From Rebecca billardiae RCC1528 (Eukaryota; Protista; Haptophyta), in the NCBI GenBank assembly GCA_965240325.2, contig OZ251222.1, positions 3,968,001 to 4,032,000 on the forward strand: a DNA stretch of 64,000 nt, given 5' to 3'. The notes under the pieces are model-generated. The model saw nothing but the letters and a program-made list of their open reading frames with translations. It was not told where the DNA came from and did no database searches. The position numbers and the translations under genes were made by a program. This document shows, piece by piece, positions 10,925 through 54,528 of this stretch (position 1 is its first letter; each line of letters starts with the position of its first letter).

Positions 10925-13048
10925 GCCGCCGTGCTGCTGCGGCTGCTGCGCCAACGGCGGCGGCGGCGCGCCCTCCCAGTCGGCGTGCGTGCACAGCGAG
11001 GTGGGCACGCCCACCACCTCGCCCAGCGCGTGCGCGATCTCCCGCCTCGCCGCGTTCCGCACCGCCTCCGCCACCACGCAGTCCAGCACCTCGCCCGGCA
11101 CGTGCGCCACGCCGCGCGCGTGGAAGGCGCGCAGCGCACTCTTCTCCAGCAGCTCGGCGGAGCCGCCGTCGGGCGGCAGGGCGCACAGCGCGCTGCGGCG
11201 CTCGACTGCGGGGGCGGGGGCGCGGGGCGCGGGGCGCGGGGCAGCACGGCGCGCGTGAGCGCGCGGGGCGGCGAGGCCGACGCCGCGCGCGCGCGCAGCG
11301 CGGCGCACGGCCGCAGTCCGCCGCGGGCGCGCGGTGGTGCGCTGCGCTGTGCGCGCCGTGTGCGCTGTGTTGGTGTGCGCTGCGGCGGTGCGCGCGCGCT
11401 CACCCTCGAACGCATCGAAGCGGCGGATCGCGTCGTGCAGCAGCTGCGGCGCGCACGGCGAGTGCACGGCCGAGTACGCGTCACACGCGCGGCTGCCGCC
11501 GCCCGCGCTCAGCGCCGCCGAGCCCGGCCGGATGCCCGGGATGCCCACGGCGTCTGCGCCGTCCGCGCCGCCGCCGCCGCCGCCGCCGCCCGCGCTCGGC
11601 GGCGGCGCCGCGTCGGCGTCGGCGGCGGCGCCGTCGAGGCACAGCAGCAGCAGGCGCACGCAGTCGCGCAGCGTGAGCGCGCGCGCGGTGAGCCGCAGCC
11701 ACCACGTGCACCGCGCCACGCGGCGCTGCACGAAGCGCAGCCGCGCGTCCGACAGCGCGAGGACGAGGGCGTCGTTGAGAATCGCGCCGTTGGCACACAG
11801 GGTCACGCCCGCGCGCGCCTCGACGGCGGGGAGCGCGGCGGGCGCGGAGAGCAGCGAGCGGCCGATCCAGCGGTGCGCGTACAGCGTGCCGAGCACCGCG
11901 CGCACGCACGCCGTGTTGTGCTCGATCAGCGCGCCCGTCCACAGCTCGTCCACCTGCGCGCACGCGCGTGTGCGCGCACGCGCGTGTGCGCGCACGCGAC
12001 GGCGTGTGCGCGCGGGGGAGGGCGCGCGCGTGAGGCGGCGGCGCGGCGGCTGGCGCGGCGCGAGCGCCGACGGCGCGGACGGCGCGCGGCGCGGCCGTCG
12101 CGCGCGCGCGCGTGCGCCCCACCTGCGCGTGCTCGTGCAGCAGCAGCACGTCGATCACCTGCTTCCACGACAGCAGCGTCAGCTCGTCACAGCCGGCCGA
12201 GGGCGCCGCGTGCCCCTGCGTGATGTTGGTGAGGCACGCGCGCACGAGACGCGTCGCCTCGCCGTACCAGGCGTGCCAGCGCACGGCGGTGCGCACGAGG
12301 GGGGCGCGCACGCGCGGCGGCGGCGGGCCACGCATGCGGCGCGAGAGCGCGGCGTCCGAGCCCGACGCGGCGGCGGCGGCGGCGGCGGCGAGCGCGGACG
12401 TCGAGGCGGCCGCGCCGCCGCCCGCCGCGCCCGCCACCGCCGCCGCCGCCGCCGCGAGCGCGTCCGCGCCCGCCTGCCCAACCTCGCTGAGCTCCTGCCG
12501 CGCGGTCGCGCGGCGCAGCGCCTCGGAGCACAGCTGCTCGCGCAGCACGACGCGCATCATGCGGCACAGGCACCACTGGTTGTGCCGCGCGGTGGCGAGC
12601 GCGATCGCGCCGGCGAGCTCGCGCAGGCACGCGCGGCGCAACGTCACGGCGTCGGCCGGAGCGGCCTCGGCGGCGGGCGCGGGCGGCGGCGCGGGCGGCG
12701 CGGGCACGAGCGCGCCCACGCACGCGCCGGCGAGCAGGGCCTCGAGCGCGGTGGCGCGCTCGCGCGCGACCGCGTCCGCCCACACCGCCTGCACCTCCGC
12801 CGCGCCGAGCGGCACGCCGAGCGCCGCCTCGATCGCCGCGTCGCCGCCCCACGCGCGCATCGCGGCCTCGTGCGTAAGAGGCTCGCCAGCGTGAAGACTC
12901 AGCTTGCCCGCGGCGGCGGCGGCGGCGGCGGCCGAGCGCGCGGAGCCGGCGGCGCCGCCCGCGCCGCTCGCGGCGTCGGCGGCGGTGAGCGCGGCGGCGA
13001 GCGTGCTGAAGCTCGCCTCCGCCGCGTCGGCCGAGCTGCCGCCCTCGC

Positions 13049-52433: not shown

Positions 52434-52642
<209 letters not shown>

Positions 52643-52762
52643 CGACGTGGTATGCAACGGGCAGGCGTCAGAGTCAGCATATATATATATATATATATAT
52701 ATATACGCGTCGTCAAGTGACAATATATGTCACGCGCGCGGTGCGTGCGCACATATATATAT

Positions 52763-54493
52763 GTGGGGTTATTGGTACAATAACTGATTGTCTAAGAGGA
52801 CGACAAGAACGCCGGGCGCCAGCGCCGCTCATCAGCCACATCGCCCTCTACCAGACCATCGCCTCAAAGCGCTGCTCCCGGACAAACAGTCTGTCCGGGT
52901 TTGTCGCCGCGGAGATCTGCTGTTTCCGGCGCCCCCTGGCTGCTTCGCCAGGCGCGGGCGCGCGAGATGGCTGCAGCCGGGCTCGTGGCCCTGCGTCGCC
53001 GGCGGCGGCGGCTCGCACGCGGGTGGCGCGTCGCGTGCACCGACCAACATCTTTCGGCAACTCAGCGGTAAGCAACGCTCCGCATCGCGCCCCCTCGCGC
53101 TTCGGGCCACCGCCTCTTCTCTCTCTGCGTGCGTGCGCACTTTGTCTCTTCCGCACCCCCGATCGCCACCGTTCCCTCTTCGCCACATGCCTCCTCCTCC
53201 GTGGGTGCGCCCCCACGCGGATCGCTGCTCCATCTCTCCCGCCCTGCCTCGGGATCGCCCCGGTGCCAACGCCAGCCGGCTCCTACACAAGGACCGCTGG
53301 CGGCACACCGCGCGCCGGGCCCCGTGCGCACCCGCGGGCCATTCACAGCATCCGCAAAGGCCGTCTAGCCTTCTCCTGCTTCCGCAGCGCCGTGCCCGCG
53401 GGGCGGGCTGCCTGCTATCTCTCCTCTTCGGGTTCCATCTCACTCGCACTGCCCCACCTGCCCAGCCCCCGCTGGCCGGCCCTCGTGCGTGCGCGACTCA
53501 CACGTGCCTTGCCCCTTTCCTTCCCATCACTCAATGGGATTTCTCCTCCACGCGGTGCTCCCCAACACACCATGAAACGGGATCACTCACGCACCGCGTC
53601 TCGTCGACGGCGAGCGGCATGCCCACCGCATCTGCTGCCGCTCGCCAAGGCATGAGGACACGTAAATCCCACTGAGTAGGAACACACGCAGCCGCCTCGG
53701 CATCGACATGCCAGGCGGCGTGCCCACCTTCGGCCAGCAGTTGGCGTCGGCGTTCACGAGGACGGCTAGACGTGGGGTTATTGGTACAATAACTGATTGT
53801 CTAAGAGGACGACAAGAACGCCGGGCGCCAGCGCCGCTCATCAGCCACATCGCCCTCTACCAGACCATCGCCTCAAAGCGCTGCTCCCGGACAAACAGTC
53901 TGTCCGGGTTTGTCGCCGCGGAGATCTGCTGTTTCCGGCGCCCCCTGGCTGCTTCGCCAGGCGCGGGCGCGCGAGATGGCTGCAGCCGGGCTCGTGGCCC
54001 TGCGTCGCCGGCGGCGGCGGCTCGCACGCGGGTGGCGCGTCGCGTGCACCGACCAACATCTTTCGGCAACCCGCCCACCCAGGGCCCGTTGGTCTGGTGC
54101 TCGGGCGGCGGGACCACAACACCCGCCGTCCGACCGCCCGGTCCTGCGGCGCTGCACTTAGGGCTCATGTGACCCCCTGCCTCCCAACACGATTGGGTTT
54201 TTCAGGTTAGGTCCCCAGCAGTGCTGCTCCCGGGCGGTCAGGTGGAGGTTCAGTCGACGAGTCCGCAGGCGCTCAGCCTTCCGTCAGCGGACGTCCGCGC
54301 GGGATCACTCACGCACCGCGTCTCGTCGACGGCGAGCGGCATGCCCACCGCATCTGCTGCCGCTCGCCAAGGCATGAGGACACGTAAATCCCACTGAGTA
54401 GGAACACACGCAGCCGCCTCGGCATCGACATGCCAGGCGGCGTGCCCACCTTCGGCCAGCAGTTGGCGTCGGCGTTCACGAGGACGGCTAGAC
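52763..54493 (+). mobile_element. Non-autonomous split-direct-repeat element (A-X-B-A-Y-B), TOC1/PAT/Ngaro-like tyrosine-recombinase retroelement architecture
   Basis: A1 52763-53061 = A2 53772-54070 (299 bp). B1 53578-53771 = B2 54300-54493 (194 bp). B1 abuts A2 with no spacer. (AT)n flanks both outer ends. No RT, RNase H or YR motifs. Confidence 0.75.
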
Positions 54494-54528
54494 ATATATA
54501 TATCTTATAGTTATGTAACTCTGTTCAC

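Follow-up and report, generated by a model that had tools for sequence, protein, structure and literature searches.

The window analysed here, a stretch of 64,000 nucleotides from the haptophyte Rebecca billardiae RCC1528, carries a composite repeat of 1731 bp with the order A-X-B|A-Y-B, in which two A blocks and two B blocks alternate with two unique segments. The features of this copy and of its flanks are as follows (positions are those of the window).

52750..52762, no strand: left flank, what remains of the (TA)n target, with ...TAT at its end; TAT precedes GTGGGG in 19/19 intact copies
52763..53061, + strand: A1, outer 5' repeat, 299 bp, equal to A2 (sequence reading, repeat finder, block BLAST)
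52768..52784, + strand: 5' terminal hairpin of A1, a 7-bp stem with a GTA triloop (GNA-type)
53062..53577, + strand: X, unique internal segment, 516 bp, non-coding (block BLAST, ORF composition)
53578..53771, + strand: B1, inner 3'-type repeat, 194 bp, terminating in ...GGCTAGAC; intact in 30/30 copies
53767..53803, + strand: structured B1|A2 joint, with outer stem TAGAC...GTCTA, internal loop, inner hairpin and triloop (predicted fold)
53772..54070, + strand: A2, inner 5'-type repeat, 299 bp; aberrant in ~1/30 copies
54071..54299, + strand: Y, second unique segment, 229 bp, non-coding
54300..54493, + strand: B2, outer 3' repeat, 194 bp; intact in the window copy, rearranged in 16/30 copies
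54494..54503, no strand: right flank, what remains of the (TA)n target, with A(T) at its start; after CTAGAC, A in 19/19 and AT in 17/19 copies

Sequence reading and a repeat finder agree that A1 and A2 lie at an offset of 1009 without a mismatch over 299 bp, and that B1 and B2 lie at an offset of 722 with 100% identity over 194 bp; the finder's own A pair measures 300 nt at 99%, beginning 5 nt early, inside the flank. A1 opens with GTGGGG followed by the terminal hairpin. The internal joint reads ...GGCTAGAC|GTGGGG..., and the outer joints read ...ATATAT|GTGGGG and CTAGAC|ATATAT. The original prediction, made from the letters of the window, had proposed the layout A1-516 bp-B1|A2-229 bp-B2 with an internal joint equivalent to that of a circle formed from the two outer ends; the layout holds to the base and the junctions are as it gave them. 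The immediate target of this copy is a short (AT) run, five units of which remain on each side. A long compound array, (AC)53(AT)50, sits 120 bp upstream of the copy.

The window copy is a young copy of a dispersed family. The 1731-bp unit was compared by BLAST with the source genome (72 Mb, 41 contigs), and among the best 70 of 280 candidates there are 21 full-length matches (1-1731) at 93-100% identity. Block-by-block BLAST found the order A-X-B|A-Y-B kept in all 30 best loci, which are spread over 19 contigs. A copy on contig C16 matches that of the window throughout except for one mismatch in X (where identity is 99.8% over 516 bp), which supports the earlier suggestion of recent activity. 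When 5' motifs were paired with 3' ends along C1-C8, about 11 composites and about nine short A-B forms were counted, and neither A-X-B (1009 bp) nor A-Y-B (722 bp) stood alone as a monomer in the contigs surveyed for them (C1, C3, C5, C7 and part of C8). Independent monomers had been named at the outset as the finding that would turn the element into a tandem of two related units; the composite itself is the repeated unit and monomers are absent from the surveyed contigs, hence that finding did not arise.

Insertion is strict with respect to its target. All 19 intact copies are inserted at TAT^A within (TA)n, with flanks ...TAT|GTGGGG...CTAGAC|A, and the targeting of (TA)n that had been proposed for one copy therefore extends to the family, as does the combination of block order (30/30 loci) and (TA)n flanks (19/19 intact copies). 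The right flank is AT in 17/19 intact copies, and long (TA)n surrounds most of them. The two informative copies among the 19 (L002 and L017) exclude a target-site duplication of any length; the other 17/19 lie in AT repeats, where a 2-bp AT duplication would be invisible.

Comparison among the copies reveals how their repeats have changed. A1 equals A2 exactly in 14/19 copies, while the family comprises two subfamilies about 10% apart in A, including shared indels, and the mean A identity between copies is 94-95%. A1 and A2 thus evolve in concert across the family. Two copies, L008 and L027, are chimeric, with A1 from one subfamily and A2 from the other. Rearrangements (small duplications, deletions and partial duplications) are confined almost entirely to the outer repeats: they affect B2 in 16/30 copies and B1 in 0/30, A1 in 9/30 and A2 in about 1/30, which amounts to 25/60 outer against 1/60 inner repeats (Fisher p = 4e-8). 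This restriction to the outer repeats, together with the equality of A1 and A2, matches what the SDR (split direct repeat) model would predict if the inner B1|A2 served as a master from which template switching restores the outer repeats. Within the outer repeats the changes sit on the inward-facing side, away from the microsatellite. Three independent A1 duplications connect A290-297 with A179-187 and four independent A-B junctions begin at A289-298, and at least seven independent breakpoints fall in this 10-nt interval at the 3' border of A (A289-298). One locus, L021, is a head-to-tail tandem with an exact B|A joint, and such tandems are consistent with a circle having entered a copy already in place.

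The element itself has no coding capacity, and with its relatives it has in common nothing beyond the termini that act in cis. Its longest ORF has a flat codon-position GC content (0.66/0.68/0.66), in contrast to the real ORF of the large relatives (0.77/0.61/0.82); BLASTN against a coding copy gave no match and tblastx gave compositional noise alone, which bears out the earlier statement that the element is non-coding. A TGTAA-type poly(A) signal was sought in B and did not occur consistently. The genome contains 441 instances of the 5' motif GTGGNG-GTTAT(4-14 nt)ATAAC-CTGA, against none for a reversed-pattern control, and 203 of the 19-nt end of B. For at least four non-coding families the common sequence is limited to about 45 nt at the 5' terminus and at most 30 nt at the 3' terminus, and alignment shows that the terminal motif is common to the window family and the coding copies. 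The window family (A 299 bp, B 194 bp, total 1731 bp) is the first of these; the second (A 468 bp, B 225 bp, total 1653 bp) and the fourth (A 408 bp, B 79 bp, total 4644 bp, with a 46-bp minisatellite as X) have the same split layout, and the third, fam3, consists of dispersed single units of about 640-730 bp. One locus of large size, L031, with its A copies 4 kb apart, was considered as a coding element and set aside, as its 925-aa ORF is an artefact of the 46-bp minisatellite. The Y spacer measures 91-103 bp in the second family and in the coding copies on C3 and C18. The design of a long unit followed by a short unit recurs in unrelated sequences, which argues that it is functional. What the window family retains is the set of cis parts: the first 45 nt or so of A (GTGGNG and the hairpin), the terminal nucleotides of B, and a B1|A2 joint of the circle type.

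A search for longer copies encoding RT, RNase H and a tyrosine recombinase (YR) had been recommended, and relatives of 5.7-8.4 kb were found, with the layout of the window family, its 5' terminal motif and (TA)n sites; their termini are similar rather than identical to those of the window element. A scan of the genome with the Phage_integrase profile gave five near-identical weak matches (24-26 bits, against a Pfam cut-off of 27.1), and downstream of each lies the joint ...GGACAC|GTGGCG followed by a hairpin. For example, the copy on C18 is a 6.5-kb SDR element in (TA)n with a 981-aa ORF. This copy, with its weak integrase match and no RT, at one time suggested a Crypton, a reading that was dropped in view of the YTDD and RNase H motifs of homologues, the ORF on C33 and the predicted folds. 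The copy on C33 (5655 bp) has the structure (TA)n|A1-ORF-B1|A2-Y-B2|(AC)n(AT)n, and its single ORF of 1317 aa contains motifs of RT (DVADFF, FTDD), of RNase H (SDAA...ADAASRG) and a C-terminal HSFR...RIYAR, with an Ala/Pro/Arg-rich low-complexity linker of about 280 aa between RNase H and YR.

The enzyme assignments of these relatives rest on motifs and predicted folds. An AlphaFold model of residues 1-720 of the C33 protein is of moderate quality, with a mean pLDDT of 59, with 70-88 over the palm, thumb and RNase H, and the top 50 Foldseek matches of this model in the PDB are all RTs of retroviruses or LTR elements (MMLV, Ty3, CaMV, HIV), the best E value being 3.6e-8 (MMLV) at TM scores of 0.2-0.3. 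The last 318 residues (pLDDT 84) resemble Cre, Tre, XerH, XerA and the Tn1549 integrase over about 280 residues at a TM of about 0.5; a profile search of solved structures returned weak matches to Cre only. Pfam RVT_1 did not match the C33 RT even at E 10, nor did a Pfam scan detect it in any of the homologues. Hence annotation would overlook a coding family of this kind or place it wrongly among the YR-only transposons. No Pfam methyltransferase domain matched the C33 ORF after RNase H, where the stretch is of low complexity, which suggests a gene set that is Ngaro-like rather than PAT- or DIRS1-like. Homologues in other organisms are single proteins of 1.6-1.7 kaa with consensus RT motifs (D.KD.F.Q, RLGFG...SN..QRF, YTDD), RNase H motifs and a C-terminal YR, and the integrase family is matched at the C-terminus of most of them. 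Two metagenomic contigs with homologues were inspected; B-type repeats lie 3' of the gene in one, and (TA)n and the GTGGNG motif are absent from both.

The coding copies differ in what they carry. The five YR copies in the genome are at least 99% alike and form its sole YR lineage, and there are about 10 RT-RNase H copies. An ORF1 of 852 aa and an ORF for RT-RNase H are present in the copy on C3 (8361 bp), which is without YR; a 1481-aa open frame is found in three YR-less copies, those on C11, on C24 and, the one read over its whole length, on C3. On C5 and C26 there are divergent RT lineages (55-61% identity) with neither YR nor the terminal motif. A single copy uniting ORF1, RT, RNase H and YR was not found in the genome, and the C33 copy is without ORF1, so that the coding set looks like a collection of complementary deletion derivatives. 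The termini of the YR elements (GACAC|GTGGCG) differ from those of the window family (TAGAC|GTGGGG), and the case for cross-mobilisation is therefore built on common motifs and structure only. With this reservation, the window family is probably mobilised in trans by the coding relatives.

The joint between B and A has a structure of its own. In the predicted fold the last 5-6 nt of B pair with positions 28-33 of A across the B|A joint, and the outer stem exists in the versions TAGAC/GTCTA, GACAC/GTGTC and TACAC/GTGTA. It encloses a symmetric internal loop, an inner stem of 7-8 bp and a GNA triloop. Between families, the changes at the top of the inner stem compensate each other (TTATTG/CAATAA, TTATAGG/CCTATAA, TTATAAC/GTTATAA, TTATAGC/GCTATAA). 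The fold is the minimum-energy structure in five families (z-scores -2.5 to -4.0), and in the alignment of the joints 100% of the cells are paired, against 20-58% in slid controls, with two outer-stem pairs changed on both sides; the covariation comes from only five distinct sequences, and 11/500 shuffles reach the observed score. As modelled, the fold requires B and A to be contiguous, as they are at the internal joint and would be in a circle.

The earlier interpretation of the window copy as a DIRS-order split-direct-repeat retroelement is supported by its layout, by the footprints of copying and by the coding relatives with RT, RNase H and YR. We consider it quite likely that this is a copy of a non-autonomous SDR retrotransposon of the DIRS order, with an apparently Ngaro-like gene set in its relatives, non-coding in the manner of TOC1, and moving by a circle and YR route that we infer. 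Transcription would run from within A1 to within B2, with a start that the three A1 duplications would place near A179-187, and the RT/RNase H of the coding relatives would copy the element RNA. Template switching would then use the inner A2 and B1 to restore A1 and B2 on the outside and give a closed circular DNA, which the YR of the relatives would insert via the B|A joint between the T and the A of TAT^A in (TA)n, with no duplication of the target. These steps follow the published SDR/DIRS model, from which the RNA and circular intermediates are presumed.

An alternative is that the family moves as DNA in the way of a Crypton: the YR would excise a circle from the two ends and reinsert it in (TA)n, and the split repeats would be leftovers or the products of circles entering resident copies. 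We regard this as improbable, and it is retained mainly because of the short A-B forms. These are 362-526 bp long and lack X, Y and the internal joint, and their junctions vary in position within B (B4, B10, B11, B72, B84); nevertheless, one junction type is found at at least four loci and another, slightly variable, at roughly at least nine. Such recurrence in forms that have no internal B|A joint is hard to explain through the RNA route alone. The A-B forms may move as DNA via YR alone, or they may be recurrent by-products of copying; one junction uses the microhomology GGCA, and a repeated origin of some of the recurrent junctions is possible. A DNA route would also be compatible with the dispersed monomeric units of fam3, with the precise head-to-tail tandems and with the nature of the B|A joint, an imperfect palindrome or hairpin of the type that recombinases read. 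Against it, the sole intact ORF and all long homologues combine the YR with RT-RNase H in one fusion. The equality of A1 and A2 across subfamilies that are 10% divergent, and damage restricted to the outer repeats, are predicted by copying and not by cut-and-paste. Furthermore, a recombinase should render a composite with an internal site of the circle type unstable, but the surveyed contigs contain neither A-X-B nor A-Y-B as products of such resolution.

Far less probable is a reading of the composite as two related but independent elements in tandem, A-X-B and A-Y-B, for example Helitron-like rolling-circle units that were later copied together. Both halves do have common ends with a hairpin near one terminus, and insertion into AT-rich DNA proceeds without obvious duplication. 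However, neither half stands alone in the surveyed contigs, the long-unit and short-unit layout recurs in families of unrelated sequence and in the coding elements, and the coding partners that share the terminal motif encode RT-RNase H-YR. Helitrons are recognised by TC...CTRR ends, a hairpin near the 3' end, insertion at A^T and a Rep/helicase partner, and the family departs from this description: the termini are GTGGGG...CTAGAC, not 5'-TC...CTRR-3', and the flanks are T|...|A, not A|...|T. A rolling-circle tandem was accordingly ruled out on the termini, the flanks, the lack of monomers in the survey and the concerted change of A1 and A2. A reading as an LTR element or TRIM was likewise rejected, given that half-repeats form the ends and that a 5-bp duplication is absent. 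An assembly artefact or an immobile local duplication, conceivable a priori in repeat-rich DNA flanked by microsatellites and raised as a caution in the original prediction, is excluded for practical purposes by 30 loci on 19 contigs that have different flanks and one internal structure.

Returning to the retrotransposon reading, the covarying stem-loop may have a more direct role, which we put forward as a speculation that is rather unlikely to be right as it stands. The real recombination substrate might be a folded, single-stranded circular cDNA, of which the YR would read the structure and not the sequence. Such structure-guided reading may be likened to the use of integron attC and of CTX-phage attP, and (TA)n itself may extrude as a hairpin. 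If true, this would explain how one YR lineage of five copies could serve families with three joint sequences, and how tiny A-B derivatives could spread as DNA via YR alone. It would also amount to a microsatellite-specific, structure-guided integration and to a retroelement family with a second, DNA-only route.

The rebuilding of ends and the integration of DIRS-order elements are still a paper model, and dozens of young 1.7-kb copies offer footprints of both. The simple, predictable target and the small compensating joint make the steps of replication and integration testable with a short reporter element. For the source alga, (TA)n tracts appear as landing pads for several transposon families.

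With regard to known systems, the family has several of the features by which SDR retroelements are recognised. The window element carries A at the 5' end, B-A internally and B at the 3' end, with an internal joint equal to the joined outer ends; RT/RNase H and YR, not a DDE integrase, are encoded by the C33 copy, which shares the terminal motif and the target; the terminal repeats are concerted (A1 = A2 in 14/19); and the window element, without coding capacity, has only the cis termini in common with such members, as expected of a non-autonomous element. The generic definition of SDR-type DIRS elements (PMC8969392) is not contradicted, the Y spacer being one of its 'other configurations'. 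Cryptons are alike in having a YR, an assumed circular intermediate and no terminal inverted repeats, and unlike in that they are without RT or split direct repeats and have direct repeats of only 4-6 bp (PMC13465315). The description of a Crypton as a YR-only element, devoid of RT and of long terminal repeats, thus does not apply to the present family.

TOC1 of the green alga Chlamydomonas reinhardtii, as described, resembles the window element in being a non-coding split-repeat element that depends on a coding DIRS-order relative. Its layout, A-internal-BA-short spacer-B, is that of the window element. TOC1 is larger, at about 5.7 kb compared with 1.7 kb. In the account of PMC9940879, citing Day et al. 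1988, it is described as a non-autonomous DIRS retrotransposon. Chlamydomonas DIRS elements of the TOC3 type have a methyltransferase domain (PMC9940879), whereas none was found in the coding relatives here.

Ngaros have the structure A1-[ORFs]-B1A2B2 and encode a putative Gag-like ORF1, RT/RNase H and YR (PMC8547959). The Ngaro of Cafeteria burkhardae (PMC8547959) is similar to the present family in its split direct repeats, in the apparent gene set of the relatives, where no Pfam methyltransferase match lies between RNase H and YR, and in the isolated A-B repeats that are scattered in the genome; in Cafeteria these 'isolated AB repeats' beside Ngaros have been likened to solo LTRs (PMC8547959). 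Unlike a Ngaro, the window element is without ORFs and has a 229-bp Y spacer between A2 and B2, and in its relatives a single ORF unites RT, RNase H and YR, with an RT too divergent for RVT_1. The preference for integration sites differs by type (PMC8547959), and here the target is a dinucleotide microsatellite, with a covarying hairpin over the B|A joint. The strictness of TAT^A insertion into a microsatellite, the covarying joint hairpin, and the very small size with its non-coding excess (hundreds of termini against five YR copies) are features that the cited DIRS-order literature does not describe. The window element belongs to a known class, of which it is an unusually clean example.

The ends of the split-direct-repeat (SDR) elements lie among simple repeats, and two neighbours of the non-coding 1731-bp element (fam1) in the window are as follows.

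Window 52434-52639: compound microsatellite (AC)53(AT)50, a short way upstream of the fam1 element.
Window 52640-52680: ~40-nt sequence starting TTAACGACGTGG... and ending ...GTCAGAGTCAGCA, between TA runs and beside the fam1 element.

In the coding copies and in the non-coding family fam4, the B end closes with ...ACAC and is followed by (AC)n and then by (AT)n, as seen in the right flanks of the coding relatives' loci L053 and L057 and of the fam4 locus L031. The end of the element may have served as a slippage seed for the AC run; alternatively, compound AC/AT arrays may be favoured targets or scars. The same ~40-nt sequence also stands beside other copies on other contigs (both flanks of the locus L020; left flank of L053), and is probably the end of a different transposon family that likewise inserts into (TA)n.

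L031:4263-8906, minus strand: SDR element of a fourth family (fam4), with the 5' end GTGGTG...

Its internal segment of 3.5 kb consists of ~60 copies of a 46-bp minisatellite, and the 925-aa ORF at this locus is a spurious product of that minisatellite.

At L021 (G000:C8:3157298-3162041), two complete 1.74-kb units run head to tail; they meet at a precise B|A joint, with no intervening TA. Overlapping partial units occur at a second locus (C25:1220461-1223804). Both arrangements are consistent with a circle integrating into a resident copy. The tyrosine recombinase (YR)-bearing copy on C18 has lost its reverse transcriptase (RT). At L052:570-1723 it carries a 285-bp internal duplication on both sides of a 584-bp piece with a B|A joint of another non-coding family, fam2, which implies an inter-family recombination or insertion inside an element, outside (TA)n.

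The RT of the coding family (L053:3723-7673 and L057:1997-6439, both minus) gave no match to Pfam RVT_1 even at E 10, and the family's YR falls slightly below the Pfam cut-off. In routine annotation, the coding elements would thus come out as YR-only or without a name. Two further RT-RNase H lineages share 55-61% identity with the C33 protein, the 1317-aa RT-RNase H-YR ORF.

G000:C5:2994500-3004499 (L054): RT-RNase H lineage.
G000:C26:685500-695499 (L055): RT-RNase H lineage.

Neither has a nearby YR or the shared 5' terminal motif GTGGNG. L054 starts with GTGTCC... immediately after (CA)n(TA)n, and this start is similar to the 3' side of the stem at the B|A joint.

A distant homologue of 1578 aa is encoded by a marine metagenome contig (L058, 13641 bp); its RT, RNase H and YR are assigned from the family alignment, Pfam matching the YR only. 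Downstream of the homologue gene lie two direct repeats of 123 bp, one at 11355-11477 and the other at 12162-12284, and the two contig ends repeat one another. These repeats suggest a tandem or circular SDR element from an unrelated marine eukaryote.
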